Under the pieces are notes generated by a model. The model worked only from the letters and a program-made list of their open reading frames with translations, was not told the DNA's origin and did not search any database. DNA of 64,000 bases from Setoptus koraiensis. Taxonomy: Eukaryota > Animalia > Arthropoda. The stretch's first letter is position 1, and each line of letters begins with the position of its first letter. Shown here one piece after another: positions 15 to 28,722 of the stretch. The stretch is from contig CM106585.1 in the NCBI GenBank assembly GCA_048013815.1, forward strand, positions 18,600,001 through 18,664,000, in the 5' to 3' direction. Both the position numbers and the translations under genes were made by a program.

Positions 15-3000
15 ATGCAGCTCCAGCAGCACCAGCAACTGCAACAAATTGCCAACCTGATGACCCAAAACGCGCCCACGCAACAGCAGCAGCAACAGCA
101 GCAGCAGCAACAGAAGCAACTATTTGCGGACAACCAGAAGCTGGAGCAGCTCAAAAACAAGGAGAAACACGAACAGTCGGCCGTGGCCAGCCAAGAGGTC
201 AAGGAGCACTTGGCCGGATTCATATTATCCAAGCGGCAGTTGTCACAGCAGCAGCAGCAGCAGCACAGCACCCAATCCGGCGGCCAGCAACAGGAGCCCG
301 CCACCCAGTATCAGCTGCAGCAGCCGGTTGCGGTGGGCGCCGGTCACCGACAGCAACTGCACAGTTTGAGCCAGGACGGCCAGACGGGCGCCGGGCCGGA
401 CGCGACGGGCAAGCAGCTGCAGCAGCAAAGTTGCAACAGTGATAACACGGGCACGGGCCACAAGTACACCGTGCCCTCCAGGTACCAGGCCATCAAGAGC
501 GGCTCCGACGATTATCCGCTCAGGAAGACCGCCTCGGAGCCGTCGCTGCCGCTGAAGGCGCAATCGTCGCTGAAAAAGAAACAAATTGAGCGCAGGAGCA
601 CGGTGAGTCCGCTGCTCAAGCGAAAAATAGCCGCCGCCGTGGCTAGACGACGCATACAATTGACGCAACAGTCCCAATCGATGGATTACACAACCACCAA
701 CGCAAGCACGCCGGCGACAGCAACAGCAAACAACAGCAACACGAGCAGCAGCGCCAGCGAACCGCCAACCACATCAACGACAACATCGTCGGCGCCCAGC
801 ACGTGCCGGCAGCAATCGTACTCGCCGTCGCCCCCACTGAATCACCATCATCAACCGCACCAGCATCAGCATCATCATCATCGGCATCACCAGTACAGAT
901 CGCACAGTCACCGGGACGTCGAGGTGCCCATGGATTACGACACCCTGAGCAGCAGCCAGAATCCGTATGTCATATGGCAGCGGTGGCAACTGCAACAGCT
1001 CGGCGTCGATATGACAAACAACAGCAACAACAACAACAACAACAACAGCGCAACAAACAAATCGCCGGCGCCCGCGAACAAGGCTCCCCAAGCGAGGCAC
1101 AGGTACAACTCGTTGCACCAAGACTGCACTGTTGACAACAATGTGACAGACAAGACGGAGCTAAGTGGCCACTCAATCAGCGCCAACATGACAGCTAGCC
1201 ATCATATGGCCCCAGCTGCCGGTGGTCAGCTGTCGATGTTGGCGGCCAGTAATCGGCATCACAACTCCATCAGTCAGCCACTGTTGAGCAGGGCCCAGAG
1301 CAATCCGCACCTACAACAGTCGCTGTTATACCAGCAGCACCAACAGCAGCAGCACCACCGGCAACAACAACAGTCACCAAATAGGACAGTGAGCAAATGT
1401 TTCATTCCATCTAGGAACTCATCCACAAACACCGCCAATACCTCAAATCCGAGCAACGCTGGTGCCGTCGACTGTGGGGCCCTGCTGGCGCATTCCGTCA
1501 CCAAAAAACAGTCACCCACAACTTATCCCATATTCGCAGACAGTCCAGACGACGGCATCCAGACCACTGCCAGCGGCAGCAGCAACAACAACAACAACAG
1601 CACCAGCAGTAACAACAGCACCACTGGCAACAGTGGTAGCAACAGATCAATTTTAGCCAGCCAACTGCAGCAGCCAACAACCGGCGACAAAACAATAGCG
1701 GCAGCAGCAACAACAGCGACGTCAAATTTAGACCAACAGCAGCAGGCCATTTTGGCCAAATTGCTCGAGCAGCAACAACAACACCAGCACGTTAAACAGC
1801 AGGTCAGACAGACAGTGTTACAAAGGAGCTCGAGCAAAACAAAAGTATTTCACAACATTGGCGGCGGGGGCAGCCTAGACAGAGAGCTTAAATCAATTGA
1901 ATCCAGACAGTGGTCGCTGGACTCGTCGTCGTGCAAGCCCAGCAGCGGCGGCGGCGGTCTGTATAACCAAAAACTGGTCACCAATTCAATCAAGAATCTG
2001 GCCAGCAGAACGAGAGACAATCCAGCGGCGGCAACAGCAGCAGCCAGCAACAAACAACAGAGTAGCAGCAGATATATTCACAATGCACAAATGTCAATGC
2101 CAATGTCGTCCATTTCTTCCGGGTGCCCATCTCAACAACAACAGCAGCAGCAGCATCAATTGCAGCAAGCTCATCATCATCATTCGTTGCCAATGAATCA
2201 CGGTCTAGCCAGACCATTGCCGCTGTCGTTGGCGCACAGAAATCAGCAGCATTCGTCGTCGTCGTCGTCGACATCGTCATTGTTGTCGCAACAAGACTCG
2301 CTAGACGACACCAGTTTATCTCAGGTGATTGATTTGACACTTAACAGTGATTCCAAGAACAAGACAACAAGCAGCCAACAAAGCAAGCCTTGCTCTTCTT
2401 CTTCTGCTTCCACCCTAATTGATAATAATACAAACAAAATTGAATTGGACGAGTCCGATTTAACCGCGCGAAGCGTCAAAGACGCATTCAGACAATTAGA
2501 ATTGCGCTCGGGCCACATCCAAGCCGCCACCCCGCAGCAACCATCAACCAGTAACCATCCAGCCAGCAATTTGTTTGGCGCTCATCCATCAAATGTAGTG
2601 GCGGGCATAAATCTAACTGGTGGGGGCAACAAGTTATCCACCAGTCAGACATTGCTCCAAGAATTGGACTCTTTCCGATCGAGAATCGATTCGAACGCCT
2701 TGTTGACCAACGCAGCAGCAGCGGCGGCATCAACGGGCAACTTTGATCCAAATCTGGCCGCCGCTCACCTGAACGCCCTGAGATTGTCAGCGTCATCGCT
2801 GACGTCAATAACTCCATCAACAACACCCACGCCGGGATCTTCGATGGCGCAACAATTAGGAGCGGCAGTGTATCAATTTCCATCGTCGCAAATGAATCAA
2901 AGTCACACAACAGTGGCAACAAAACAGCAACAACAACAAGACAATAACAATGATATTCTGCCGTATGCTAATTACTTTTTGCCACCTACAAACAATCAAT

Positions 3001-5338
3001 ACAATCAGTATAGCAATATTGACGATTATTTGAGACATTTCAGACAGGCCAAGACTATTGAGGCGGCCACCGCAGGCAGCGCAACAAATCCTTATTGTGC
3101 CTCCAGCGCTAACAGTCAATCGATCGATTACTCAACGTTGTCTCAATTGGCATTCCTCAATCAATCGATTGATGCGACAACAATGTCGTCGACACCCTCT
3201 AGTTTAAGTAGCGTACTACAGCTACAATGTAGACTGGCCGGCGCTACCGGAAGTCAGCCACAACACCATCAGCACCAGCATCAGCAGCACCAGCAACATT
3301 CAATTGCTGGCATTGCTTGCAGTGACCACCAACAAGAATCGTCGAGCTCGTTGCAAATGGACCTGTCCAAGCCTACGCCAATACTTCAGCGAACCCTATC
3401 AACGCCATTGATTGGTATTATTGCACACAACAACAAAGAGGTCCCTGGCACGGCCACCACGTCAATTCATGATCATCATGGCATCAAGCCCAACAGTCAA
3501 CAAATAATTGGCTCTGTCGTGGATGCCAGAATTGACGATCTCTACAAGGACAACCTATGTGATCCAACCGGCAGCATCAGGAGTATGGCCAATCAGCAGA
3601 ATTTCAGCGTTGACATTGACTCTCAGCAACAATGCTCAAATGTGCTGTTCAATCCAGATTCCACTACGGCCATCGCTTATGATCCATCGATGAACAAACA
3701 CCAGTGCATTTGCGCCAACAATTTAAACCACCCAGAGAACAGTCTTCGCGTTATTTCAATTTGGGACAGATTTTTGGAGACCGGCTTGGCGGCCCGTTGT
3801 GCAAAAGTCAGATCGCGACGTGCGACTCTCGACGAGCTACAGCTCTGTCACAGGTAGGCGCCCCATCTCACGATGACATGCCTTTCAACTGACTCTCATT
3901 CTCTCTCTCACTTGCTCACAAGTAATTACAATCAAAAATTTCATATCTCACGTCCATCACAACTCACGATACCATCATAACAGTGAAACGTACACTTGCT
4001 ACTTCGGTTTGAGCCCGTTGCAACGCAACAAACTCGGGGGTCTCAATCTGCAGGATCTTCCGCTCGAAGGACTAACCTTACTGTCTTGCGGAGGTCTAGG
4101 TGTGGACATAGATACCACCTGGAATGAACTTTATACACCGACTGCCGCCAGAATAGCCACAGGTTGTGTGATAGAGGCAGCTATAAGCGTTGCCAAAGGA
4201 CAATACAAGAACGCATTTGCGGTCGTCCGACCTCCAGGTAACAACAGCGCTATTTATCTAACTTTACTTAAGCTTTTTCGATATGTCCATGTTCAAACGA
4301 TTGATTTTGTTGAATCCGTGTTTTATTCCTTTGGCTCATAGGTCACCACGCTGAACAATCGCAAGCGATGGGTTTCTGCTACTTCAATTCGGTGGCTGTT
4401 GCCGCAAGAGTGCTAAATACCAAATACAACATGGAAAAAATTTTGATTGTCGACTGGGACGTCCATCACGGAAATGGAATACAAAAGATATTCTATGAGG
4501 ATCCCAACGTTCTCTATATCTCATTACATAGGCACGATGAAGGAAATTTCTTCCCCGGCACAGGCGACATTCAGGAGGTCGGCGCTGGTAAGGGTATCGG
4601 CAAGACAATCAACATCGCTTGGTCCAGTGATATTAATGAGGTGGCAATGATGGGCGACGCTGAATATTTGGCAGCCTTCAGGAGTATAGTGTTGCCCATA
4701 GGTAGAGAATTTAATCCATCTATAGTGTTAGTTGCGGCGGGTTTTGATGCAGCCGACGGCCATCCTCCCAATTTCGGGGGCTACAAATTAACGCCAGCCT
4801 GCTTCGCCCAAATGACCAAACAATTGATGTCCTTAGCAGAAGGAAAAGTTGTTTTGATACTGGAGGGAGGGTAAGTCAAAGTTGGCTAGTGTATCTTATT
4901 CATTTATCGTCGTATAGCCATACTAATCCAACCATCACACTATGTTGATATTGTTACAGTTACGAAATAAAGGGACTATGCGATTGCGCCCAAGCTTGCC
5001 TATCAACCCTACTTGGGGACAAGACAGATAACATCAAAGATGAAGAGCTGAAAAGAAAGGCCATCCTACCAGCCAGGGAAACTTTACACAAGGTTGCAGG
5101 TGTTGCAGGTATGTAATTGTGTAATTATATTGCGCTACTCTCTAATTTTAATTCATGATTTATATTTGATCTTACATCATAATTAATAAATATCTGTGAT
5201 ATCTTGAATTGAATTGATACTCCTTTCAAAATAGTTTATTTTTGGCCAAGTATCAGGAAGAATATTAACGCCATAGAGTGCTCAGCTTTTGACGCAATAT
5301 TAAAGGAACAGGAGGAAACCGTCGATATTTCTAGTTAG
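15..5338 (+). CDS. HDAC4: Class IIa histone deacetylase (HDAC4/5/7-like); exons 15-3853, 3984-4237, 4342-4870, 4960-5108, 5235-5338; probably 5'-partial (frame open to the window edge)
   Basis: MEF2-binding-like segment [18 protein letters not shown], 14-3-3 site RKTASEP, basic NLS-like stretch. Deacetylase domain motifs [30 protein letters not shown] and LEGGY. GT-AG introns keep the frame (4875 nt, 1624 aa from Met15). Confidence 0.93.
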
Positions 5339-7272: not shown

Positions 7273-7344
7273 GGTCGCGTGGTGTAGTGGTTAGCATATA
7301 CGGCTCTGATCCGTTTGACATGAGTTCGAATCTCATCGCGACCT
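7273..7344 (+). tRNA. tRNA-Gln, anticodon CTG
   Basis: Cloverleaf: acceptor GGTCGCG/CGCGACC, D arm GTGTAGTGGTTAGCAT, anticodon arm TACGG-CTCTGAT-CCGTT (one T:T mismatch), T arm ATGAG-TTCGAAT-CTCAT, discriminator T. Confidence 0.9.
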
Positions 7345-7354: not shown

Positions 7355-7663
7355 GCTTCATTTGCGCGCCCCCTTCCAGCCGATCGTTGCCGGTACTGCT
7401 TCCCGCCTCCCCCACACACACGTTCATTCCGAATAATTCTTTGGCCATAACAAATGTGTTATTATTGTTTCAATACATGCTTGTCTATCACACTAGAATC
7501 TAGTGACTAGATCAGTACTGTCTTTTGTTATTACATTGTATTGCATTCTCAAGCTAGCCCAATTTATCACTCGCCGGCTCGTATATTATGGATTTGGCTT
7601 CATTTACAGCCACTCACAGTAACACTTAAAAATAAAAACAAGTTCCCCATCCACCAGAGCAGA

Positions 7664-9967
7664 ATGACCGCACGAACGCCCAGGCACGATAAAACCCAGC
7701 TCGTCTATCTGGAAGAGATACACGAGGCGCTGAGAAATATAGATAGGATCAACTATAAGCTCTATCACGTTATCGGCATATTCAAGTACGAGGAGACTCT
7801 CGGCAAGGACGTGCACATTTGGAATCTTGTCGATGAAACATGCCCGGACGGACTGAAAATATGCCTCAGGGGCCTGTATGGCACATACCCGAAACCAAAA
7901 ACGGGTGACATAGTCAGAATACACAGGATCAGATTGAAAACGGGCCAGCAATATCCCGAATGTCCACAACCCAACAATGTTGTCCTGTGGCGAACATTTA
8001 CCGGTGCCGATATAACGCAATATGAGAGTCTCGCTAAATCTCCTACTGTCACTCCTGCTGAATTGGAGAGGAGAGAAAAATTAGAATCCTATGTACCCTA
8101 CACTAAAATATCTGACATTTGTTCATTAAACACCGATCACATAGACATTGCCGGCCGGGTGGTGGCAACAAACTCCTGCGATGGCAATTATCGCAATCAT
8201 GCTATTCAATTGATGGACGGCACCCAACCAACAGGTACGTGGGAAAGTTTCTATCAAGACAAAATTCTAAATCCAGCCACCCGTTCTGCCGCAGACACTA
8301 TCACAGTTAAGGTATATTCCAAACAGACCCCATACGATGTTGACGATCACATTAACGTGGCCTTGGCCTTGAAAGAGGGCGATTTAGTCTACATGACCAA
8401 CGTTAAAATACTCAAGATCAATAATAAATACAAATTTGAATTGGGCTCAAATCACAAGTTCGGCAAATGCATCCGTCTCGTGCACCCTTCCAGCTTGTTT
8501 GGTCAGGTCGTTTTGATGAATTTAAAAAGGATTGAGCCCGACATGGATGAGGATTGTTTCTCTGATGACTCCTCACAGATGACAGACATCTACAATCATA
8601 TTAATCTTCAGGCGTTGACAGAAAGCCAAGCTTCAATCCAAGATGCTCAGCAGGAACGTGAAACTGCTCATGAACAAAATATGGATCTAAACGGAAGCAA
8701 AGTTGCGGATTCACTGAATGTAACTCAAAACGCAATCAATGTAACACAAGTTGAACTTCAACAAGATGCAACTTCTAACGATACCCGTATCAGCCAAGTT
8801 GTAGATCCACAAAGTTCAAATCAGAGTTCAAACAACAACTCCATCCATAATATATCTAGTGGACCTAACAACATTTCCGACAGTATTTTCGACGATTCCA
8901 TTCAATCTTCAGGCGAGCCAGTTTCTAGACCGCAGGAAGAAGTATCAATCTTAGAAGCGCGTCCCGTGTCTCAACCTAGACAGACTACTAGGGAAGTGTT
9001 AAAGCTAGATTCGGTGATCAGATCTCTCAAAGAAAAGGATACGAATAAAATAGTAGACATATTTGGAATATTTGTGTTTGAGGACCTTCTTAGCCAGGCC
9101 TGCCGGATATGGAAACTAATGGATGAGTCATGTCCAGATGGTATTAAAATTAGATTAGTCGGTCCCCATCAACCCTTTCCTAGGCCGCTCAACGGAGATA
9201 TTATCAGAATACATCGATTAGAAATCAAGTATGGGACTGCTTATCCTGAGTGTTCACAGCCAGCAAATATCGTGGTTTGGCCTGGTTTTGAAGCTGCCGA
9301 TTGTCCTCATATAAGTGTCTCACGAAATCCTACTATTACTCAAGAAGATTTAACGCGCAAGTCAGACTTGGAGCAATTTTTCTCTTTTACTAGAGTCGAA
9401 GACATCGGACCTAGCACGGGTAGTCATGTAAACTTAGCAGGCAAAATAATTGCATTGAATCCCTGTGACGAAGCATACGGAAATTTCGTGATACAGATAT
9501 TCGATGGATCAAGATTCAGAGCTCCCTTTCATTGTGTTTTCTCGGAATCAATCGAGCCTAAACCCAGCGTAGATAAAAGGATACTCGATAATTCTATAAT
9601 TGTTAAAATTTACTCCAAACAGAGGGGCAGTGATACAGATGCTCACGTCAACACCGCACGAGCACTTAAAGTAAACGACTTCGTTTATATAGCCAATGTT
9701 AGAATGACATGGGTCAGCGGAAGAATTAAATTTGAGTTGTCGTCTAACCTACTTTTCGGGAAATGTGTTCGCAAGATAGATAAAAGAAGTATAATTGGAG
9801 AGATGATATCAAGAGACGTGGACATACTAAGCTTCAATGAAGTTGACATGGTTGGTGCTGAGTCTTTCGAGGAGAATTTATCTCGTACATCTACAATAAC
9901 ATCAAATAATTCTAATATATCCAACTACTCTAATTTATCAAACTATGAAGATTGCGCCAGTGCTTAG
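7664..9967 (+). CDS. POT1: POT1-like single-stranded telomere-binding protein with a duplicated OB1-OB2 module (767 aa from first ATG), intronless
   Basis: OB1-like LVDETC...GDIVRIHRIRLK resembles POT1 GDIVRFHRLKI. OB2-like DIAGRVV...QLMDGT...ITVKVY..DHINVALALKEGD...KFELGSNHKFGKCIR follows. The whole unit recurs at about 8996-9830. Confidence 0.78.
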   Translation: MTARTPRHDKTQLVYLEEIHEALRNIDRINYKLYHVIGIFKYEETLGKDVHIWNLVDETCPDGLKICLRGLYGTYPKPKTGDIVRIHRIRLKTGQQYPECPQPNNVVLWRTFTGADITQYESLAKSPTVTPAELERREKLESYVPYTKISDICSLNTDHIDIAGRVVATNSCDGNYRNHAIQLMDGTQPTGTWESFYQDKILNPATRSAADTITVKVYSKQTPYDVDDHINVALALKEGDLVYMTNVKILKINNKYKFELGSNHKFGKCIRLVHPSSLFGQVVLMNLKRIEPDMDEDCFSDDSSQMTDIYNHINLQALTESQASIQDAQQERETAHEQNMDLNGSKVADSLNVTQNAINVTQVELQQDATSNDTRISQVVDPQSSNQSSNNNSIHNISSGPNNISDSIFDDSIQSSGEPVSRPQEEVSILEARPVSQPRQTTREVLKLDSVIRSLKEKDTNKIVDIFGIFVFEDLLSQACRIWKLMDESCPDGIKIRLVGPHQPFPRPLNGDIIRIHRLEIKYGTAYPECSQPANIVVWPGFEAADCPHISVSRNPTITQEDLTRKSDLEQFFSFTRVEDIGPSTGSHVNLAGKIIALNPCDEAYGNFVIQIFDGSRFRAPFHCVFSESIEPKPSVDKRILDNSIIVKIYSKQRGSDTDAHVNTARALKVNDFVYIANVRMTWVSGRIKFELSSNLLFGKCVRKIDKRSIIGEMISRDVDILSFNEVDMVGAESFEENLSRTSTITSNNSNISNYSNLSNYEDCASA

Positions 9968-9995: not shown

Positions 9996-10500
9996 TTACT
10001 TTTTTACGGTGAAGCTTTCTCCACAACCACACATACCGGTGATATTTGGGTTACTAAAAACAAATTCAGAAGAAATTTTAGTATCAACGTAGTCCATTTC
10101 TGATCCGATCAGAGTTAATTGCGCTTTCCTATCGATGAGGATTTTGACGTCGTCCTTTACAATTTCCACATCGTGCTTTTCAGCAGTTGTGGCGTAATCT
10201 AGTGTATATGTGAGCCCACTACAACCTCGTTGTTTAACGCCTATCCTCAAGCCAACTGCATCGGGCCTGTTTTTGAGCAAATGTTTTATTCTCGCAATGG
10301 CAGAATCTGTCTAGAGAGTATCGATATGATAGTGACGTTGTAAGAAAGTTAAAAATTAAATTAAATGTTGATCGGATTATAACAGTGCAATGTCGTCGAT
10401 TTAATTGTTTCCTACTTACAAAAGATAAGGCAGATCTAGGATTGTTTGACTTGGTCATGTGTTTGACTGTTGCTGAGATCACCCGACCAGAGGCACTCAT
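9996..10500 (-). CDS. ISCA1: Iron-sulfur cluster assembly 1, mitochondrial; exons 10500-10420, 10310-9996 (131 aa)
   Basis: ALSF/TDSAIARIKHLLK, GVKQRGCSGLTYTL and SEFVFSNPNITGMCGCGESF. GTAAGT...TAG phase-0 intron. Confidence 0.95.
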
Positions 10501-11574
10501 AATGACGAGCAATAGTGATACAACCGAGATGTGTTTAGAGAAGAGATTTGAAGCAATCTCTCTAGTTGGATGGTCTAGATTGATATTTGGGTAGAGGACA
10601 ACATGTTTGACTAAACATGATGATAACTGTTTTGTTTTTATTATGTCAACACGTCTATACTATATGGACACGGCGGGCATAAAGTACAAGTGTAGCGAAT
10701 AACAGCAGCAAGAGATGACATGGGGGGGGATGCGATGAAATGAGAGGGGGTGGGTAGGCCATACTGATAGCGTTGCGGAAAAATTGTCACCATGTTTAAA
10801 TATGGCGCCCACCTGATTGAACGGAGACGCGCGCATGAGGTGAACATTTATAAGGGTGAAAAAGAATAGTTTGCATTTTGAACTGGTATAGCCTAGGCCT
10901 GACTTCCATAGTGTATCGTCATGAAGCATTGTGAAAGGTAAGGGAATGCATTTAGGCTGTGCAGCGAGTGCCACATTTACTAGCACTACAATTGGATGAA
11001 TAAGGTTAAGGACCGCACACGAAATGTACTAGGAAAGCGACCACTAGCACAGAGTGTATCTTTACTCTATCTGTGCGCGATTAGTCCCAATGTAGATCTT
11101 AAACATAATATCGATCTGTGAGCCTTTAGAGATAAAAACTGTGCTTTTTTGATTCTTTTAGAGCAATCACAAATGATCTCCTTACAGAGACTTGGACCAT
11201 GTCAAAAATTTTCTCTTCTACACACTCGGCTCTGTAGAATCGTCGTCTGACTTCTAACAAATTACAACGCTACAGTAATAATAACTGCGATCGTCTCACA
11301 TTATTATTATTATCATCATATTACTAATTAATTACTATTACACTTTGCAGTGATTGTGTGGTTAACAAACAGGTTATTACTATTACTATTATTATTATTA
11401 ATATTAATATTATTGTAGTTATTTCACAATTACTATCAATTGGCAAAATCACCTTAGATTCCTGGACAAATTCACACACAATAGGCTCGCTTGATATTGA
11501 TCACTTATAACGATAACAGTAAACGGTAAACAAAACAATTATATTCCATTTCGAGGCGGGCTATTCTAACGGGT

Positions 11575-11729
11575 ATGGATACCTCCAAGCAGAAGCAAGC
11601 TAGGATAAAACAATTAAAATTAAAACTTAGAAATGAAGAACACAGGCTAATCTTGCTGAAAAGATTACGCCTATCACAAGCGCGTTCAGTAAAACAACAA
11701 CAACAACAACAATTACAACAGTTAGTACA

Positions 11730-11762
<33 letters not shown>

Positions 11763-14061
11763 GCAACAACAGAATCAACACCAACAACATCCACCACAAG
11801 CCAGCACAAATGGGCCCCCTTACGGAATGGGGGGCGCCCAAGCGGCCCAATCAAATGTTGGCATGATTCCCATGCCTGCACATGCACACCAACGGGCGCG
11901 CCAACAATTGGCCCCTGGCAAATCTAACTCGTCGTCATTGGCTCCCCATAACAGATCGCCACATGTTGGCAATATATCTAGGCCACCTATAACTACGCCA
12001 CCCAATGTTGTTCTAGGATTCCCAGGTTTGAATCATCATGGTAGTGGCAGCAATACGTCCAGCAGTGCATCGCCTTCATTGGCGCAACAACACAATCACA
12101 AACAGGCACTAGAACAAAATAAACAACAGAACCAGGCACATCTATTGGAGATAACCAAACAAAACCAAGCGCAACTATTAGAATTAAATAAACAAACCCA
12201 TGCCCAATTGTTAGCACAGAAACAGGCCTCTGCTAAGCATACGCTACGCAAACAACTGGAGCGTACTCTGTTGCAACTAGCATCGCCACGGACCACAAGT
12301 AACGAAATCAATTTCATCCCCAATGGTAACAACCAAGAATTTGTCTATTACGTCGGATTAGAATCATGTGTTGATTATCTCACCTCAAAGCAGCCTTTAC
12401 AACATAAGCAACCACAACAACAAGATCCAAGCAACCAAGCTAATGATGAAAATCAAAATCAAGAAGAGCTAGTTCAACCACCTAAAAAGAATGGTTTAGT
12501 TAAAACAATCAATGGAAAACCATTGGAGTGCACACAATGTGGTACAGATTTCGCACCTACATGGCAATGGAAAGATCGCGACATGAGAAATAGTAAACTG
12601 AAGCCTTGGCCAAGTGAGTTATTCAATAATTGCTCGGATGGTAATATTAATAAAAAGCGATTACTCGCTGTTGTTTGTGAGAATTGCTCTAATGCGAATA
12701 TTAAGAAGGCAATTAAAACAGAGCACACGAGTAAAATAAAGCAAACTTTTGCTAGGGCCTTGAAACAGGAGCAAGAGATTGATCAGCGAATAGCAGCTGA
12801 GGCGGCGGCCTCTCCACCACCTTTGCCTACCACGCCGGTACATCAACAACATATGCAAATTCCAACTCCACCTCAACAGCAAATTACCCCACAACATCAT
12901 CGCCAATCCTCTTTTTCAAACTCATCACAACACCTTCGTCATTCAAACCAGCAATCGATGCGCGGTTCCCAAGCTATATCTGCCCAACATATGAACAATA
13001 ATCCTCTATCAGCTTCCGTGCAAGCATCCCAAGCATCATCTCTACTTGGACAAAACAACTTGTCAACGATGCAATCACTGGCCGCCTCTTTGAACAGCAC
13101 ACCTAACCACCTCCGTCACTCAAATCAGCAATCATTACACAATCAGCATCGCTCTCAAAACCAATCAGCTCAACACATGAATAACAATTTATTGTCATCT
13201 GCTTCGATGCAAGCCTCTCAGGCATCGTCTTTACTTGGGCAAGCAAATTTGTCTCCCCAAATGCAGACGTTCGCTGCTGTTTTAGCTGCTACGGCTGCAG
13301 CTGTTAATATAAGTCCATCCACTTTAGCATCGGTAGCTGGTCCCTTTTTAAGTCAATTAACTGCCAACCCCAATCAACAAATTAATCCATCACAATTGAA
13401 TTTCAATAATTTGTCTCTACCGATACCGAACGTTAGTGGTAATAACAGTTCATCAAGCCGCCGAGGCATGAGTCACTCATCTTCTGGGCACCAATCTAAC
13501 AATCATCAACACCATAAGAGATCATCGAACAATATGAATACTAGCCATCATCAAACAGGTGGACACAGGAGTTCATTATTGTTGTCTCAAAATCAACAGT
13601 CATCTTCGTCACTTCTAAATAATATCAATAATTTGACTCGCCTTCAGCAGTTGTCACAATCTTATCAAGGTGGAAACTCTCATCATAACAGTGGTATGAA
13701 TATCAGTGGTTCTTCCTCGTCATTAGATCATCCAATGCCTGCTCATGCACACCAGAGATCATCCAGGGGACATAGTAGAGGCGAACAACAGAACAGTAAT
13801 TCTTCTCATCGCGCTGAAAGAAATCACTCATCACACCAGCAATCAGCTCACCAATCAAATCCAATACCGGCCCATGGTAGACTTCCTCCGGGACTGTTTT
13901 CTCATACTCTACACAGTAGATCACCCCTAGTTGGTAATATGTCCAGACCACCGATAACAACCCCGCCCAATGTAGTGCTTGGTTGCCCGATGACTGATTT
14001 TAGAAATCTTGGTTCTAATTTGAACTCTCCTTCAAGTAGAAACGAAGGCAGGAATCATTGA
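11575..14061 (+). CDS. GATAD2: GATAD2A/B (p66, simjang) NuRD subunit; true start may lie in an upstream exon
   Basis: CR1 coiled coil RIKQLKLKLRNEEHRLILLKRLRLSQ, AKHTLRKQLERTLL...NFIP..NQEFVYYVGLE, and GATA-type finger CTQCGTDF...CENC followed by EHTSKIKQTFARALKQEQEI. Confidence 0.9.
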
Positions 14062-15534: not shown

Positions 15535-18500
15535 AGCTAGCTACATAATATTGTATTTATCATCCAATCTACGACGACAATGACGACATCGATGCCGATC
15601 ATGGCAGCAACTGAATGTGAGCTCAAAAGAGAGGAGAAAAAGAAAAAACAACTTTGCTGCTAGGCAAATAGAGTGCCAGTCGAGCAAAGGGATGCAATGA
15701 GATGCAATGAGGGGAACGAGCAAAGAAGGCAATCAAGTTGCTTGTTGGCTGACTCATAGAACTCACGGCCTGGGCCGGCTCGCAAAAGTAGCAATCGCAA
15801 CTAGCGGGCCTCTGTCTCGATCTGCTGCTCCATCCCGATACAGATTTTATACCTGATATCGGCCAATGAATGAGTGCAAACACCCTTTTACTCATATTTG
15901 CATATCTGGCAAGGATAGATCTACTTGTTTTGATTTTCTTCTGAGTGAGAGTAGATGCAAGCTGAACTGCAGCGGCAACTGCAGCTGAAGTGAAGCCAGT
16001 GGAAGTGATTCTTAGAGAGATATGAAAAGTTGATTATCAGCAGCAGCAGCAACAACAACAAGTGACAATATCCAGCTATACAAACACACTTGTCGAGCAG
16101 TGTGTGTTTGTGTAAAATATCAACTAATTAGCTATTAGTCAGTGATTAGCGATCACCTTCACCTATTATCTGACGTTCAAGCGAATTGTTTACGCGCGTC
16201 AATTATCGCCTGCAAACCGATTGTTGAGCCAGCGAATATTGAGCCGACAAATATTGAGCCGGCAAATATCGAGCCGGCAGCCGATCGGGCAAAAGCAGCA
16301 GACAGTCGGAGCGAGCCAGGCTAGTGAGAGTGGAAGTATTGATGCGATGCTTCCTCGTGATAAGACAGCCAGATACTGCCAATGGTGTTGTGATAATTAG
16401 TTGTTGATCTATTGATATGTCTATTGGTATGTGTGTCAGAGGATTTAAAATGCTTATTAATTAATAAAAAGGAATTTAGATACACATTAACACACGCACA
16501 ACAATTATTGAATGACTTGACTGGATAAACTGTTGCTATTAATAATAATATCTGTAGCTGATTATTATCAATTCGGACCCAATATTGAACAATCAATAAC
16601 AACAAGCCGGGGAGTGTTTGTTTTTGTTGTGTTCATGAATCATGATCGGATTGGCATTTGGCAAACTGAGACTAATCATTCATTATGCTTCACTATACGC
16701 TAAAAGCAACCATAACTAGTGCATTATCTAGCCAGCCGTTCTATTTTAGTAGTGATCGGACGCTTTTAGTTAGTTAGTTTTGTGAGTAGTCGAGAGAGAC
16801 TAGTCAAATTAACCCACTATAAGCCGTATGTATGTGTTGTGAGCGAGATGGTGACGGTCCATAAATACCTGCACCAAATCAAATCATCATTACTGGCCGT
16901 GAACAGCGCCAGCAGCCACTAATCACCGCTACAACTATATTGTTGTTGCTGGAAACAAACCAATTAATGCATTTTGTATTTTCATTATTCACCTGTTGTT
17001 GTGTTTACAGTTTTCAGTAGCGCCAATGTTGCATGTTAGTTGTCGATGGCTGTATGGCTGTTGTTCGCTTTCGCTCTAGCCAATGCTAACAAAATTGTTA
17101 GTTAGACGATTGGCTTGTCAGAGACAAATGGCTAAATGATAACGTTTATTGGCTAGGCGCCGGCGATGTTATTGTTGTAGTCGTCGTCGTCGTCGTCGTC
17201 GTCATCGTCGCTGCTGTTGCTGTTGTTATGGCAATTGTTGCAAGAGCAGCGAACGAAAGGCGCTGAAAGTTGCTCATGCAACACCCCAAATACCAGCAAA
17301 TAATCTGATAAGCCCATAAGCCGCCGCCAGCAAGCTAGCTGCACAACCGTTTCGCCGTCATCTGGTTTGGCTAGTCGTCGGGGAGAGACCCAACGAGCGA
17401 GCGGCTAGTACAGAGGCGAATTATCACGGTGAGAGTTATTGTGTTGCCTCCATTGTTGTTGCCAGTTGTTGTAGTCGTCGTTGCTGTTGTTGTTGTTGTT
17501 GTTGTTGTTGTTGGGAGTTCCCAGAACACAACAGCGACGACAGGTTGTATCGCGTCGACGACAAACGCCGACGATCGCTGCTGAAGATGCCGATGTTGTC
17601 GCTGGCTGTCTCCTGAAGCAAACACTGCGATCTTGTGTAATTGTGTATTTGGAGAGTGTTTCTCCCTTTCAGTTGAAGCCAACGACAGCAACAACAACAA
17701 CAACGACAACGACAACGACAACAACAAGACTACTTTGCATCAACAACAGCACGTCTAGCCAGATATTGTATGATGTTATATTGTTGTAGTCGCGTGCTTG
17801 TTGTGTTTGATTGCCAGTGTTTGATTGTTTGTGCCGACTGTGTATCGCCAACTGACAATTGTGCGAGGTGAAAACTGCGATTTATTTATAAACTTATTTA
17901 TAAACTCTCACTTATGAAATACCCAGCGTAAAACCACTGTCTGCCGGTAGCAGGCAGCAGTGATGCTATCACACTAGCAAGCCGTTACACCTGTTGGCGC
18001 TGTCGTTGCTGTCGTTGGCCTCTAATCTATTATTGTTGTTGTTGTTGTTGTTGTAGCTAGGGCTGTTGCAACATCAACAACAACATGGTAGCTCACTGGC
18101 AAGCTGATCAGCGCGCGCGCTAAAGATGCTACCGAGTTGAGCGGAGTCGACTCGACGACGAGAGAATTGCCTAGCTCACTGCATGCCTGTAGCGGCTGTT
18201 GTTGTTTGTCGTGTGTTGCATAATCGCGTAGCTGTTGACACGGCCATTTGTTGTTGTTTGCTCCCTCTTTGCGCATTGGCCAATTGTGGTTACGTAGGCA
18301 ATCAATTGTGACGCAATCAGCATTGTTCGTCGGCTTTGTTGACCATTATCGGCCGTGCTAGTCGAGATCAACGTGAGCTGGCGTTTGTTTGTAATTTACA
18401 CGTAACAGCGACAACAACAGCAGCAACAACAACAACAGTTGAATAAATAGTGCATGCCAATTGCGCACAACAGTCCGCTACGAGCGTGCTCGATTCGCAA

Positions 18501-19386
18501 CAACAGCAACAGCAGCAGCAACAACAATGACAACGACAACAACAGCGACAACAACGACATCGACATCGACGAAAACGCTCGCGAAGACAAATGTGCCAAG
18601 AGCAACATTGTTGCACGTGATGATGATTGTAACAGTCGACGTCATCGTCATCACGAGAGATGCCAATCACATGACGGAATCAACCTGTTTCATCTTGATC
18701 GCTTGGCGTCGTGCTGTGCCGGTGCCTTGTGCGGCGCTGATTAGCCAGCACATATCTAGCCAGCCGTCAACCATCTATAGCTGGCTGGCTGGCTAGCCAG
18801 CTAGTTAACAGTGGCTAGTTAGTGAGCCCGGCAAGTGGCAACCGGCAAGCACCAAGGACGCTGACACACTAATTAGTAGTTTAGTTACAGTAACTGGCCG
18901 GCAGGCAGCTCGGCATTGAAGGTGAAGCTGGCAGCGAGTCACTAGTTACTGCCTGTTACTGGCAATAGGAGCTACGACAAACAACAATGCTACAAATGTA
19001 TGATCAATCGAGGTCGCGCAAGCGGAAACGGCACTGCCGATGGGGGCCCCGATGTGTCAGGCGAGTGATCGATGGGACAGGTTGCCGGTTTTGGTGCAGC
19101 TGGGCATGCCAGATCAAATGAGATGATATGAGATAAAACGAGATAAAATCAGATCAGCCAAGCAATAAGGAATCGAATGTGAATAGGAATATAATGAAGT
19201 GTCGTTATCGAAGTGCCAAATTGGCCACAGGCGACGCTGCCAGAATGGCCCGTTTGTGCATTTATTGCGCCGTGCATCGCCGCTCATTGATTTTCATCAT
19301 ACTGACATTGTGAGTTGACATTGAGTTGATACGGATCAACGGCCCGTGGACGTGCCACTCAAGTGCCCCCATTTTCGTTGGGCACC

Positions 19387-19499
19387 AACCCGACGAACCC
19401 GGCAAACCCGACGAACCCGACGAACCCGACGAACCCGACAAACCCGACAAACCCGACAAACCCGACAAACCCGGCAAACCCGACAAACCCGACAAACCC
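19387..19499 (+). repeat. 9-bp minisatellite (AACCCGACA/G), about 12.5 copies
   Basis: Units aacccgacg, aacccgaca and aacccggca read directly. Confidence 0.95.
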
Positions 19500-21476
19500 A
19501 AATCCCTGTGCCGCCTCGGGTAGCTGTTGGTTAGATTTCTCTGGCGTTTGTGCCGACTGGTGGCCGACCGGTGGCCGACTGGCGGCGAGCTCGATGGCCA
19601 GCGACCAGTGTAGACACGTTGAGAGATTACAAGCCAGCAGATTGTGTAAGTGGCCGGCCAGCGGTCGAGTGGAGCGCCGGTTGCGGCGCTGGCGTGATGG
19701 GGCCCTCGCGGCGGAAAGCGCAAATAATTGTAAAAAATTAAAAAATTGCAATTAATTGGCCGCAAGTGTAACATTGTTTGCAATTAATTGCAAATAGTTG
19801 CAATTATTGCAGCAATTATTCTAACAAGCGACCGCTAGCTGATGTTAGCACAACACTTGACAATATATAACATAATATATCTGTTGTGCAGTCAGTGAAT
19901 TACAGTGTATGTGTCGCGTTGTGCGTGTGTGTCGTTGCAAACAGCAACAGTTGTTTGCACGATTGTAGCAATTGTTTGTCTGTCGGCAGTGGGCAGTGGG
20001 CAGTGGGCAGTGGGTAGTCAGCTGACCGCTGTCCACTGTTCGGCCGATCCGACAATTGCGAGTCACGGAAGAGGCCACGCAAAGGTCACCGAGTCAACAC
20101 TATACACACTGTAGAGTCTAGTATTGAGTGTATTGAGCGTGCTGTGGCGCACAATGATTTTTTATTTGCAACTTATTGCGCAATAACACCCACCAACAGT
20201 GAGTTGGTGGTGAGTGGCCGCTGGCCAGCGTGTGCGTTGCGCAATAACGCAATAATAACGCAATAACAACGCGCTATAAATAGACTATTTAATAGACTGC
20301 ACTGACTGCCTAATGAGCTACCAGTCGTTACCTAAGCAGCAACAGGTGGCTCACCTTTGCGAGCTGGCACAAGCTTGCCAAGCCGACGGTTTGTGCCGGC
20401 TCGCAATTGGTGCCAATTTGCAAACGAAGCGACGAGCTAGCCAAAGAACGAGAAGAAGAAGAAGCGACTGCTCTATTGGCTCAACTCACAAGCGACTTGA
20501 GCCAATGGAGGAAGCCAGCGCAACAATGTTAACAATGTTGTGCGCTCATTGTGCGCAACGAAAGCAAAAAGTGGCTCGGTCAGCGACGACAAGCCAGCGA
20601 CGGCAAGCCAGCGACGGCAAGCCAGCGACGAGAAAGCGCTTGAATATCCGAATTGAAAGCGATCGCATGTGTTTGTTGCCACTTGTAACCATTTGCTCAA
20701 TATCTCAATCTTGTCAATGGTCAGTGGCTGCAGTCGGCCGGCCACAACTGGCCAGAGTCGGTCGATCGGTGGCAGTCGTTGATGTAGTTGTTGGTGCTGT
20801 TGTTGTCGTTGTTGCTGCCGCTGTTGTTGTTGCTGTAGTTGTTGTTGTTGCTGTCGTTGTTGTTGGCGACCCACAAGCGCCAACAACGCGACCGAGCAGC
20901 GGCCGACAACGACACACAACGAGCGCTCTGTCGCTCTGTTCAACACAGTCTGTTGTTGTCAATGTGGCAGTTAAAGGCCACTCTGGGCGGCTCGCCAGGC
21001 CGGCCAACAGCCAAGCGAATGGCCGCTGGCCGCTGAATAGTTTACCTGTCTATTGAACTTGGCTCCTTTCGATGCGAGCTGCGGCTCGCTCACAGCGGCC
21101 GGCCAGCGGGCCGCCGACAACCGCGCCGGCCACCGACGGCTCGCTGACGCTGACCGGCCCGCAATGTGCAATTGCGTGGCGTAACAGCGCCAGCGCCAGC
21201 AACTAATTAAATATCGCCATTACGTCTGACAGTTTGCCGGTCAGTTGGGCCAGCGCGTCCAGTTTGGTGTGTGCTGTCTCGCGGCGCCGTCTCACGGGCG
21301 CTGTCTTGCGAGTTGCGAGTCGCAACACTGTCCGTGTGTCGCTGTTGACGGCCGGCCCGTCGGCCGGCCGGACGCGAGACGACACGGGAGCCCGGCACAA
21401 GGTGAGCTCGGGCGCACCGTGGCTCGCATGAGGCTCGCACAAGGCTCGAATTGGGACCAAAACGGCCGGTGCAAAC

Positions 21477-21504
21477 TGTCGAAACACTGGCCAGTGTTTC
21501 GACA
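21477..21504. repeat. Perfect 28-bp palindrome
   Basis: TGTCGAAACACTGG|CCAGTGTTTCGACA; explains why KHWPVFRQF appears in ORFs on both strands. Confidence 0.97.
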
Positions 21505-24215
21505 ATTCCGATTATCGGAATCCGACGCTCTCCAGACTCTGGAATCCAGAGTTGGCATTGAATCTCGCCGCTCGCTGGCCGCCGCCGCTCGCTGGCTGCG
21601 CGTTGTCGCCAGTTGGCATTGGAATTCCGATTTGAATTGATTGCCGTGAATGGGATTGACACACACACACACACTCTCGCCAAGGTAGAAAAACAAACAC
21701 ACACCCTTGGCAAGCCAGAAACGCACACAAAGTAACAGATGAGAGCTGCAACCAGAATCTGCGAGCAAACAGCGCAACCTCGCTCGCCAGCGCAACGCTC
21801 GCAGAGCACTCATAACGGTCACACATTAATTAATATTAATTGTTAATTGTGACATTGCAACCAGAGCAGCGCCAGCAGCGCCAAAGTTTATCAGCGGATG
21901 AACTAAAGTGCTTTCGCGAATCTGCCGAGCGAGCGAGAGAGAGAGAGCGAGAGAGCGAGCGAGAGCAACGTCTTGTCGGTGTCGGCACTAACGGTTGCCG
22001 ACAGTTTTGTGTGTCAGGGTGACGCAATGCGAAGCGACCAAAGTGAAGGCGGCCAGCGATAAACAAGAGCGATAAACAGGGCACACAAACAACGGACAAA
22101 CAACGGACAAACGGCGGACAGACGACGGACAAACAGCGGACAAACAACGGATAAATGGCAACGACCAGACCAAGGGCCAGACTGACTTGCCGGCAGCGCG
22201 AGCCACACATCGCACTCTGTGTCGGCTGTGTCGTCGCTGGCAGCCATAAGCGAATGCTAATGCACAATAAATAATTGATATTATTTCAGCTCAGCTCGGC
22301 CCGGCTCGCCGAGCGTCAGCCGAGAGCCGTCCGAGAGCCAGCCGAGAGCCAGCTGAGAGCATCCAGTCTTGCCACCGACTGTCACTGCGTGTTGTCGCTG
22401 GCTGTCATTGTTGTCGCTGGCCGTCATTGTTGTCGCAATTGTTGGCTCTTTGTCGTCATAACGCGCTCGCTAGTTGGCTCCTCCGTGCGCGCACGTGGCG
22501 CCCTCGATCGCATCAGGCGGCCCTCAGCTGCACTACGCGGCCCTCGGTTATCATAGCCGGGTTATGTAATAGGTGGCCGTCGTTTGCATCACGCGGCCGC
22601 TCGTCGCCAGGAGCCCGTCAGCTCGCCAGGGTCTCACAGGGCGGCCGGCAGGTGGACAGATGTAACTGTCAATCAGCTCATTCACAGGTGAACGCAGCTA
22701 ATTCACGGACAAACGCAGCTCATTCGCGGACAAGCGCAGCTGATTCATAGGTGACAGCCAGTGACAATTGATGACCGGCAAGTGGACAGCTGATCGTCGG
22801 GTATCACCAACTGGCAGCGGGCTGGTGCCCGCTCGCCGGTAGCGGGTAGCTGATCGCCGGTCGGCCCGATCAGTGATCGCAATTGCGGAATCGCAGATCG
22901 GCGAATCGGCAGATCGGCGGATAATTTATTTGCGAGTATAACAACAATCTATTAGAGATAATACACAGACACAGGCGGGCGACATTGTCTGCTCAACGTG
23001 ATTCAATGCGCGCGGCTTATAACGAAAAGTGTATTTATATATCCTTTATTCATCTGAGTGGCGTCGCATGTCAGCTTGCAACAATCAGCGCGATACCATT
23101 ACGATGCTTGTCGGCTCGCCGGCTCGTTCAAGGCTAACAGATAAGACTAACCGACTAACAGTGCCATTGACAACAAGTGTTTGTTCTGCCAGCGAGCGGC
23201 TTCTTTCCTCTTGCAGCTCGCCGTTTGCTTTCACTTTTCGCTTTTATTTTGAATCATTTAATTTCATTTTATCATCATTTCAATTCGCATTACGTGTGTT
23301 TGCATTCATTGCGCCCATTTTGCGCTCGCTGCGTCGATTCATTCAGCGTCGCCGAGACGCGCTCGCCGAGCTCAACCCTTTCGTTCCAATCGCTCGCACA
23401 ATCACTCACAATTTGTGAGTCGCAAACCGCAAATCGCAACCGTCTCGCCGCCGCCGCCAGACAACACAAACATCACTTTAAACTCATCAGTACGAATCAT
23501 TGTAAATCACCGTCCGGCGTTTTGCACTGGCTCGACAGTCAAAATGCCGCAGTCTGGCGATTTCGAGAGGCTCGCCGGCCGAGCAGATCGAGCGCATCAA
23601 TTGGGCCAATCATGCGACACGCGGGGCACAAACCTGGTGGCCGATTGTTGCGGGCAACGGATAAATTGGCAACAAGTCGCTGTTTCTGTCTCCTCCGGCC
23701 CGTCGCGTCCTGCGGCCCGTCGCGTCCCCCGGCCCGTCGCGTCCCCCGGCCCGTCGCGTCTCCCATGGCCGCCGCGTGTCGCTCGCTTGGCGCGTCTCCC
23801 ATGGCTTGTGTGCGTCTCCCATGGCTCGAGAGCAGCGACAGCAAACGTGACAGAGGCGCTCGCTGGCCCGCTCGGTTGTGTGCCTTGGCCGGCTTGGCGT
23901 TCAGTCAACGAGCAGGAAAAAATTGTTGCAAATAGAGAGCGAGAGTCGCTTGTAATTCAAATGATCGCGATAATGGATAAAAAGTCGCTCGCTGCTCGTT
24001 GTCGCTTGGGTTGGCGCTGATCCGCGAACCGCTGGCGTCTAATTCGCGCGAATCGTACACATTTTCAACCTGAGCGAAGCTATGCGAACAAAGCGAAAAT
24101 TAACAACAATTTAATGAGTGATTAATTGATGCTCAGCGAGTTGCCGTCGCCACTCGCCGAGCCGCCATTGTCCAACATTGTTTCTGTCAGTGACGTTGTC
24201 GGCGGGCCGGCTAAC

Positions 24216-24249
24216 CTAGACCGGGCCGGGCCGGGCCGGCCCGGTCTAG
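24216..24249. repeat. Inverted repeat, 14-bp arms with 6-nt spacer
   Basis: CTAGACCGGGCCGG-gccggg-CCGGCCCGGTCTAG. Confidence 0.9.
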
Positions 24250-25393
24250 ATTAGCGGCTAGATTAGTGGCCACTCGCGCGGGCCGCTAATGATAGCAGAG
24301 CAAACCGATGAAAGTGAGCGCACCAATAAAAGTCGCTCGCCTGAATTATCTGGCCGCGCTGCGTTTATCGGTTTTATCGTGTTTGCGTCGGTCGTTTATG
24401 AACTGCCATGAATGGGAAACATAAATGCATAATAATAAAACACAAAAACAAAAATATGGCAAGAATGTAAAAATATGTGCGAGACAGCGCGCAAAAACGT
24501 GCAAAAATGGGAAAAGTGTAAAAATATCACAATCACTTTGCGTATGAATACAAAATGGCAACAGTGCACAAACTTTGGCTACAATGGCCGCACAATGGTG
24601 CCGACACAAGCAACCGTCTGAGCGCCGATCCAATGACAGGCGGCCAATTAAACACGCCAATTCGCTCATTATCTGTCTATTATCTGTCTATCGGGCCGGC
24701 TCGTCGTGGGCTAGGCCGACAGGCGACGAGCGGCTGACGGCTGGCGGCGCTGGCATGCGCGAACACAAGCCGCCACAAATATCATATTTGAAATACGATA
24801 AAAATAAATTTTTATGGTATTTTATTTTTTTAATTTCGACCGCTTTGTTTTCGGCCTCCTCGCCGTCGGCCCGGCGGTTCGTTCAGTCTTGCGGCGGCCG
24901 TTCGCCGGGCCGCCCGCCCGACCGCTGGCCCGGCCGCTCAGCTGACTCCGTCGCCCGACAAGCGTGAGAGCCGAATGTTGGCACCTTGTCGCCGGGCACA
25001 GGTGCTGACATTCGAGCCGAGCCGAGCGATAAATGCCAATAGCTTCGGCCGGCCACGCTGGCACCTATGCAAATTGGGCCCAGCGAGAGCAAACAACGGC
25101 GACAATCACGTGACGTCGGCGCGGCAAACAATGGCATATCGCACCACATACGCATGCGGTCGGGTAAACATGCGGTCGGGCAAACATGCCTGTCGAGCCT
25201 CTGTTTGCCTTGCTCTCGCCCCATTCGCCTTAGTTGGCCTGACAGCGACCTACTTGTCGCGCTTGTCGCACTTGTCGCCACTGTTGCGACTGCGGCCCCC
25301 GACGCCACAACCCGACGCAAATCGACGCACGCCGACGCACGCCGACGCATGCCGACGTGAGCCGACGCAAGCTGCGAGAACACCCCGGCCACC

Positions 25394-25400
25394 TATAAAT
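25394..25400 (+). promoter_or_regulatory. Candidate TATA box for the secreted acidic ORF
   Basis: TATAAAT in an otherwise GC-rich context, 130 nt upstream of ATG 25524. Confidence 0.45.
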
Positions 25401-25523
25401 AGCGACGGCTCGGCGCGCTGGCCCGTCACACTAACACACCGATCACTTGCACGCATTATCGATCGAAGCGTCGGATAAATCAAATTTGGCCCCATTTTCA
25501 GTTACCCGATTGAAGCAGCTACA

Positions 25524-25871
25524 ATGTTCAAGTCAAACACAAGCGTCCTACTGCTGGCTCTGGTGGCCGGCCTCGTGCTACTAAACGTTTGCTCGTGCCA
25601 GTCGGACGACGCGCCGTCCGATAATGCTGATACCGCGCCCGAGCAGGCAGCCGCCGATGAGCAGGCCGCCGCCGATGAGCAGGCCGCCGCCGACGAGCAG
25701 CCCGGCCGCGACAGTCGCCGGGACCCAGAGCAGGACGAGGACGACTTGCCAGGCGGATTAGATGACTTGCTCGACGACGAAGACCTAGACATGATGGAGG
25801 AAAGTTACGACGAATTCGAGGCCAACATGGCTCGCTTTTTGTCCGAACACTCGGGCCGAGGCAAAAACTGA
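25524..25871 (+). CDS. Small secreted acidic protein of unknown function (115 aa)
   Basis: ATG in good context (ACAATG). Signal-peptide-like MFKSNTSVLLLALVAGLVLLNVCSC, three EQAAAD repeats, about one third D/E in the mature part. Upstream TATA box and downstream AATAAA near 26062. Confidence 0.7.
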   Translation: MFKSNTSVLLLALVAGLVLLNVCSCQSDDAPSDNADTAPEQAAADEQAAADEQAAADEQPGRDSRRDPEQDEDDLPGGLDDLLDDEDLDMMEESYDEFEANMARFLSEHSGRGKN

Positions 25872-28014: not shown

Positions 28015-28070
28015 GCAATAGTCAGCTGACGCAAGCAATAGTCAGCTGACGCAAGCAGTAGTCAGCTGAC
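28015..28070 (+). repeat. 20-bp tandem repeat x3, each copy containing palindromic GTCAGCTGAC
   Basis: gtcagctgac at 28021, 28041 and 28061 separated by gcaagca(a/g)ta. Confidence 0.9.
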
Positions 28071-28660
28071 ACGAGGGCCGGTGCGCATCTCACAACAGTG
28101 ACACAACAGTGACACACACTCATTTCACCAGCCGGTGTGTCATGTTAAAATGAGCTGGACGACACTGGCCACACATTGCACAACACACACATTGCATATG
28201 ACAAACACATTACGTAACAAGCGCACACATTACGTATTGCATGCGCAAGGGTGGCCGGTGGCTGGGGTCAAGTGGGCCGCTCGTGACCTCTGGCTGTGGC
28301 TCATGACAGTTGCATCATGATATGTGGCGATGACAAACGGCAACGGTTCTGAGTGCGCGATCTGAAAAGTTGAGCCAGCGAGTTTGTTGTCAAAAGTGAA
28401 ACTTGTTGCCATAGTGACACACAACAGACTCTGTTGAGCGCAGCAATGGCGCCAAAATCGGTCCAGCCGGGCCGGGCCGAGCCGAGCCGAGCCAGGCGAT
28501 CAGCTGACGCGAACGGGCTCGAAAGTCGTCGACTTGGTGGCCGAGTCGGCCGGGCCAGCCAACGGGCGAGTCGGGCTCACGGGCAAACTTGATCACACAG
28601 TTAGCTGACAGCCGATAAGTGTTGCGCAACGGCAAGCGCCGATCAAGTTTGAGCCCGTTC

Positions 28661-28722
28661 GTTGCAGCCGATACCTGAGTTGCCAGCCGATACCTGAGTT
28701 GCTAGCCGATACCTGAGTTGCC
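28661..28722 (+). repeat. 19-bp tandem repeat x3 (AGCCGATACCTGAGTTGC+1)
   Basis: Read directly. Confidence 0.9.

Follow-up and report, generated by a model that had tools for sequence, protein, structure and literature searches.

A POT1-like protein with two tandem OB1-OB2 modules and neither OB-N nor OB3 in the eriophyoid mite Setoptus koraiensis

Introduction

Reading of the telomeric overhang falls universally to POT1, whose reliance on TPP1 for affinity and recruitment is central to shelterin. Canonical metazoan POT1 consists of OB-N, OB1, OB2, and a split OB3 that binds TPP1 and always keeps its zinc-binding cysteines; OB-N is present in most metazoan POT1s (Myler et al., PMC8653790). 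Through OB1-OB2, a human POT1 monomer binds two telomeric repeats (PMC3245936). The locus described here lies in a 64,000-nucleotide stretch of contig CM106585.1 of Setoptus koraiensis, an eriophyoid gall mite, hereafter called the window. Within it, an intronless open reading frame (ORF) on the plus strand (7664-9967) encodes a 767-amino-acid POT1-like protein that carries the OB1-OB2 module twice in a single chain and lacks both OB-N and OB3. A preliminary description, made from the sequence alone, had proposed an undescribed system; the protein is instead a variant of the known POT1 family. Its two-module layout is a new form of that family, and one protein with this layout already stands in GenBank under the name PTPN9. 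The literature search found no paper on mite POT1 or on a POT1 with a duplicated DNA-binding domain (DBD).

Domain organization and internal duplication

The frame of the POT1-like gene is open from 7541, with the first ATG at 7664 and a TAG stop codon at 9965-9967. The features of the gene are given below in window coordinates, with the ratio of nonsynonymous to synonymous divergence (dN/dS) against a sister species, limits from hidden Markov models (HMMs), and the AlphaFold2 (AF2) confidence score, pLDDT. Contigs called RNA-like come from two runs, X7 and X8, which behave as RNA because their contigs splice out the 109-nucleotide intron of the neighbouring IscA gene.

7664..9967, plus strand: POT1-like coding sequence (ORF list; 80%-identical ORF at the sister-species locus L001; RNA-like contigs)
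7691..8017, plus strand: OB1a, residues 10-118 (HMM limits; aligns to human POT1 OB1; dN/dS 0.11)
8081..8518, plus strand: OB2a, residues 140-285 (HMM limits; aligns to human POT1 OB2; dN/dS 0.10)
8519..8986, plus strand: linker rich in S, Q, N, and D, probably disordered, residues 286-441 (composition; dN/dS 0.34; only in-frame indels against the sister species)
8987..9307, plus strand: OB1b, residues 442-548 (HMM limits; AF2 pLDDT 93; top Foldseek match human POT1; dN/dS 0.08)
9368..9829, plus strand: OB2b with closing helix, residues 569-722 (HMM limits; Pfam POT1PC; AF2 and Foldseek; dN/dS 0.06)
9830..9964, plus strand: S/N-rich acidic tail without OB3 or CxxC, residues 723-767 (composition; stop kept in the sister species)

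The repeated module spans about 280 amino acids and occurs as two tandem copies, termed a and b. The two halves of the protein align collinearly across both OB folds, with 107/281 identities (38%) and a BLASTP E-value of 3e-75. Their Smith-Waterman score is 558, compared with 34 +/- 5 (maximum 56) for 200 shuffles. A 57-residue core, W53-W109 in the first copy and W483-W539 in the second, is identical at 32 positions; this recount gives exactly the figure in the preliminary description, and the HMM limits agree with its placement of the two modules at about 7700-8535 and 8996-9830. The 156-residue linker between them contains 24 serines, 18 glutamines, 16 asparagines, and 15 aspartates.

Assignment of both modules to the POT1 family

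Several lines of comparison support the assignment of both halves as POT1-type OB1-OB2 modules. The Pfam family POT1PC, which corresponds to OB2 of POT1, matches at an E-value of 2.7e-9 and 37.5 bits against a curated cut-off of 27.2, with its best stretch in OB2b (residues 659-692). A profile built from four mite halves finds human POT1 OB1-OB2 at 5e-7 and nothing else. When the copies are searched separately against solved structures, the profile of the N-terminal module (three species) matches human POT1 positions 33-277 at an E-value of 6e-6, the profile of the C-terminal module (three species) matches positions 24-247 at 3e-6, and neither retrieves any other significant family.

Structural prediction points in the same direction. 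AF2 modelling of module b from a 47-row alignment predicts two beta-barrels linked by a helix, with a pLDDT of 93.1 and a pTM of 0.90. Only this module was folded alone, and module a is 38% identical to it; a full-length model from a two-sequence alignment reaches a pLDDT of 26. The seven top Foldseek matches of the module b model are all human POT1, with the DBD matching at 2e-17 over 292 columns. Schizosaccharomyces pombe Pot1 (1e-12), Oxytricha TEBP-alpha (5e-9), and Teb1 (7e-8) follow, with HIN, BRCA2, and RPA70 far behind. Look-alikes in a protein language-model atlas are likewise POT1 clusters. The preliminary description had read both halves as POT1-type, and the POT1PC match, the separate half profiles, and the module b model with its Foldseek matches all agree with it; it had also named a better fit to a non-POT1 OB family as possible counter-evidence, and no such family was found.

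Loss of the terminal domains

Both terminal domains of canonical POT1 are absent from the mite protein. At the N-terminus, OB1a begins at residue 10, leaving out OB-N; an RNA-like contig is collinear with the genome from 7501, and a tRNA gene lies 320 bp upstream. At the C-terminus, just 45 amino acids follow OB2b, and no CxxC motif occurs anywhere in the 767 residues, so that OB3 is absent as well. Because the protein has neither a split OB3 with its zinc site nor an HJRL, it is without the known TPP1-binding surface. A missing TPP1-binding C-terminus had been proposed at the outset, and the short tail without CxxC bears this out, while other acariform mites retain the OB3 region.

A downstream POT1 exon is very unlikely, since the convergent IscA gene abuts the stop codon (the two stop codons are separated by 28 bp), the position of the stop is kept in the sister species, and an RNA-like contig is collinear with the genome to 9956. 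The RNA-like contigs have no joints within the POT1-like gene.

Conservation, selection, and transcription

The closest homologue is a 772-amino-acid protein from a Logan assembly of a sister species (locus L001). It is 80% identical to the window protein and is the sole close match among 5.8 billion proteins in a word-based whole-protein search. Gene order at the sister locus is the same, with tRNA-Gln, the POT1-like gene, and convergent IscA in succession. Between the two species, synonymous divergence (dS) is about 0.9, and dN/dS by the Nei-Gojobori method is lowest in module b (0.069), followed by module a (0.106), and highest in the linker (0.338). Every indel between them is in frame. 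The earlier proposal of an old duplication with both halves maintained is thus matched by purifying selection measured on each half.

A second two-module protein, KAG9509571.1 of Fragariocoptes setiger, was recovered by HMMER from 1.84 billion representative proteins. F. setiger is a phytoptid eriophyoid. In this exhaustive search the two-module layout is confined to the eriophyoid lineage of the window, and the many proteins of the same architecture that could have contradicted the preliminary description are not found. On F. setiger contig JAIFTH010000416.1 (locus L004), the two-module part is a 669-amino-acid ORF with its own stop, followed by convergent IscA. The one-ORF, four-OB layout is therefore conserved in three species, with purifying selection on both modules.

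The deposited gene model KAG9509571.1 (L004 258-6033) is annotated as PTPN9 and joins 627 amino acids of the POT1-like protein to an IscA-antisense 'exon' and a true CRAL_TRIO/tyrosine-phosphatase gene. The possibility that this POT1-PTPN9 fusion represents a real spliced C-terminal extension was considered and rejected. The model is chimeric: at residue 627 it departs from the ORF, runs along the strand antisense to IscA, and then enters the genuine PTPN9 gene.

RNA-like contigs from X7 and X8 lie on both halves of the window gene (7501-7734, 7814-8057, 9110-9620, and 9692-9956) at a depth of 2-4, compared with 6-10 for IscA, and the gene is transcribed. DNA contigs from two independent runs, X2 and X3, extend across the entire gene and match its sequence throughout.

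DNA-contact residues and telomere repeats

In both mite modules, the positions of the human POT1 contact residues Y223, Y271, R273, and F31 are occupied by Y, F, K, and Y/F, respectively. This human residue numbering is consistent with the chain offsets of the alignments. As judged from these aligned positions, the data fit two modules that would be competent for DNA binding and tuned to another sequence. The telomere-to-telomere genome of an eriophyoid ends in TTTGG/TTTGGTGTTGG, T/G-only repeats (Edwards et al., PMC11879100), in agreement with the non-standard telomere repeat that the preliminary description had raised as a possibility. The Aculops genome paper is silent on telomeres.

A wider family of three-OB relatives

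Beyond the two-module proteins, about 30 relatives of 450-610 amino acids with the layout OB1-OB2-linker-OB2 were found in Logan, JGI, and ENA assemblies at E-values of 1e-34 to 1e-68 (P0003-P0025, P0180-P0188). Their linkers contain no remnant of OB1b. Most of the three-OB genes adjoin a divergent STT3 gene, whereas P0011, a divergent member, has IscA at a distance of 3 kb. An ABCF3 gene neighbouring a three-OB gene has about 38 relatives at 74-88% identity and is at most 62% identical to named arthropods, with Oppia the best mite. One host sample of a three-OB gene is a leaf-surface metagenome of agave and cactus (PMC6978686). The ABCF3 identities and the leaf-surface sample are compatible with a possible origin of the three-OB relatives in eriophyoids. 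A metagenome scan with alignment A2 returned no match.

The linkers of three-OB proteins (L002, L005-L009; P0003-P0025) also carry a conserved motif, [LP]RRS[PA]R[LF], for example LRRSPRL, which neither the window protein nor that of F. setiger has. The motif may serve phosphorylation, nuclear import, or partner docking.

In a tree of modules, those of the mite family together make up a single monophyletic group (100/100) next to canonical acariform POT1, and OB2 alone gives a support of 96. Trees of OB1, OB2, and the whole module leave the branching inside the family without resolution. Modules a and b of the window group weakly (87/70), and a-a identities across species (32-33%) do not exceed a-b identities (33-38%). 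A single clade of b modules is not rejected by the approximately unbiased (AU) test (p 0.095), and HMMs specific to a or b give no signal of positional orthology. That F. setiger and the window share the same layout at a syntenic locus speaks for a single old duplication; independent duplications or gene conversion may offer alternatives. On the trees, AU test, HMMs, and mixed synteny, the three-OB genes may be either orthologues that lost OB1b or paralogues.

Proposed function and alternative explanations

The best explanation of these observations is a POT1 homologue that has lost OB-N and OB3, has doubled OB1-OB2, and would bind the G/T-rich overhang with both modules, capping chromosome ends alone. 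Its probability as a whole is put at roughly 0.6; POT1 ancestry, the four-OB layout, and the absence of OB-N and OB3 are its established parts. The lineage would have lost the N-terminal OB-N and the C-terminal zinc-binding split OB3, the docking site of TPP1, and gained a second copy of the OB1-OB2 module that binds single-stranded DNA. Both modules would bind the G/T-rich 3' overhang of T/G-only repeats, each covering about 10 nucleotides as in human POT1. Two heads on a flexible tether of about 150 amino acids could provide a footprint of about 20 nucleotides or two-site binding with high avidity. This avidity may make up for the affinity and tethering that canonical POT1 owes to TPP1 and shelterin, and a self-sufficient end cap would follow from that replacement.

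Several observations weigh against this explanation. The Pfam model of OB1, PF02765 (POT1/Telo_bind), gives no match at E <= 1, and OB1 is recognised solely through profile and fold comparison. In the alignment that pairs the contact residues, human F62, Y36, Y89, and H266 are not kept in the mite modules, so that binding specificity cannot be read off. The linker stretch 8058-9109 is not bridged by the RNA-like contigs, and a single full-length mRNA is therefore deduced from conservation of the ORF. Finally, the last OB2 of the three-OB relatives is far better conserved than their middle OB2 (mean of about 80 versus 40 bits), which could equally indicate a protein-binding role of the C-terminal OB.

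This last pattern, seen in about 30 proteins whose C-terminal OB2 is a lone extra fold, leads to the main rival explanation. Here, only the N-terminal module would bind telomeric DNA, and the C-terminal module or its OB2 would be a docking domain that replaces OB3 and receives a TPP1-like partner, telomerase, or CST. The C-terminal module of the window protein is also under tighter constraint than the N-terminal one (dN/dS 0.069 versus 0.106), and canonical POT1 and RPA70 bind partners via their last OB fold (PMC8653790). Such a division of labour is nevertheless judged unlikely: module b retains the aromatic and basic residues of module a at the Y223, Y271, R273, and F31 sites, its model is a standard POT1 OB1-OB2 pair, and it has no OB3-type zinc-binding cysteines. 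Less likely again is that the protein has left telomeres and, in a streamlined genome, binds single-stranded nucleic acids in a general or specialised role, for example during replication, repair, meiosis, or the handling of RNA. Every significant sequence or fold match is a telomere end-binding protein, the family search surfaced no other eriophyoid POT1-like protein, and chromosomes of the lineage end in repeats of the telomerase type, for which an end binder is required (PMC11879100). A non-telomeric role would nonetheless agree with the loss of the shelterin-docking domain, with the altered state of several human DNA-contact residues, and with the appearance of RPA, MEIOB, and BRCA2 OB families as weaker look-alikes.

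The single ORF itself could in principle be an artefact, either two tandem POT1-like genes read through or an assembly error, given the unbridged stretch between the RNA-like contigs and the internal Met codons of the linker. This is highly improbable, as three species at a dS of about 0.9 or more keep an uninterrupted frame across the linker, no indel shifts that frame, the linker has a dN/dS of 0.34, and the DNA contigs of X2 and X3 cover the gene unchanged. A broader scenario can be put forward more tentatively: eriophyoids may have replaced the POT1-TPP1 link by multiplying DNA-binding OB folds, in four-OB and three-OB forms and possibly repeatedly, alongside a switch to short T/G-only repeats, to yield a self-sufficient single-chain cap. 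Its two heads would hold neighbouring sites of the overhang, or the 3' end together with the double-strand/single-strand junction.

Genomic neighbourhood

Two neighbours of the POT1-like gene serve as synteny markers.

7273..7344, plus strand: tRNA-Gln(CTG), 320 bp upstream of the POT1-like gene (shared with the sister species)
9996..10280, minus strand: last exon of IscA (Fe-S assembly), convergent (shared with the sister species and F. setiger)

The IscA intron of 109 nucleotides lies at 10311-10419 (CT..AC on the plus strand) and is removed by splicing in X7 and X8. An IscA transcript contig (9920-10659) extends back to 9920, indicating that the IscA 3' untranslated region overlaps the last 45 or so nucleotides of the POT1-like coding sequence on the opposite strand. 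Between IscA and the next ORF, a block of about 535 bp (10779-11313) is 90% identical to the sister species, compared with 80% across coding genes at a dS of about 0.9. Neither a long ORF nor an Rfam match (E <= 1) was found in it, and RNA-like contigs covering 11134-11489 overlap it. The block could represent a conserved non-coding RNA, or else a regulatory or 5' untranslated region.

Two long ORFs flank the locus on the plus strand, at 15-3857 (1280 amino acids) and 11575-14061 (828 amino acids). Neither has a Pfam match even at E <= 1, and the 828-residue ORF has no meaningful sequence match in the PDB. Elsewhere the window encodes ordinary animal proteins, namely alpha-mannosidase, HADHA, a PDIA6-like protein, a macro-domain protein, and an NTP_transf_7 protein. 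Two blocks of the window, 18000-32000 and 38000-40000, reach a GC content of 50-55%, compared with about 40% around the POT1-like gene, and an acidic 115-amino-acid ORF (25394-26070) falls inside the first of these blocks.

Significance

The mite protein is a natural POT1 without both terminal domains and with a doubled DNA-binding module, in animals with genomes of 32-35 Mb and T/G-only telomere repeats. It offers a test case for how far DNA binding alone protects chromosome ends, for the re-tuning of OB1-OB2 to a new repeat, and for avidity in place of a tethering partner. The analysis also corrects a public mis-annotation, in that F. setiger KAG9509571.1 is not simply PTPN9, and brings to light a whole mite family, so far without annotation, of POT1 variants with three or four OB folds.

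Comparison with known systems

Human POT1 (PDB 1XJV, 8SH1, 7QXB) shares OB1-OB2 with the mite protein: each mite module aligns to human residues of about 20-280, with the GDIVR-HR motif present. Human POT1 has one such module, whereas the mite chain has two and is without OB-N and the split OB3. The relative orientation of the two folds also differs between human POT1 and the apo mite model (TM-score 0.52, root mean square deviation 7.4 Å).

The closest named relatives of the modules are acariform proteins, Dinothrombium tinctorium RWS02292.1, Oppia nitens XP_054163129.1, and Leptotrombidium deliense RWS21279.1, at E-values of 1e-12 to 1e-16. These POT1-like proteins have a single module preceded by N-terminal extensions of 280-430 amino acids and followed by C-termini of 230-280 amino acids with two CxxC motifs; the window protein has neither. 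Across Dinothrombium, Oppia, and further single-module relatives, C-termini with two CxxC motifs measure 230-410 amino acids. Canonical acariform POT1s are sister to the mite family in the module tree. The three-OB relatives belong to the same family and likewise lack OB-N and OB3, with compact, intron-poor loci and an extra OB of the DNA-binding type after a disordered linker. In contrast to the window protein, they have no second OB1, carry the RRSPRL-type linker motif, and mostly lie beside STT3 rather than IscA.

Multiple OB folds with tandem DNA-binding folds also occur in Oxytricha TEBP-alpha, Tetrahymena Teb1, and RPA70, all fold matches to module b. These proteins consist of four non-equivalent OB folds (N, A, B, and C), the last of which binds a partner, and not of a repeated two-fold module. 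Caenorhabditis elegans POT-1 and POT-2 and budding-yeast Cdc13 bind telomeric single-stranded DNA without the POT1-type OB3-TPP1 link. Each of the nematode proteins has just one OB fold; in Cdc13, which binds irregular T/G-only repeats, a single DNA-binding OB stands among four unrelated OB folds. Unlike these proteins, the mite protein carries a duplicated POT1 DBD.

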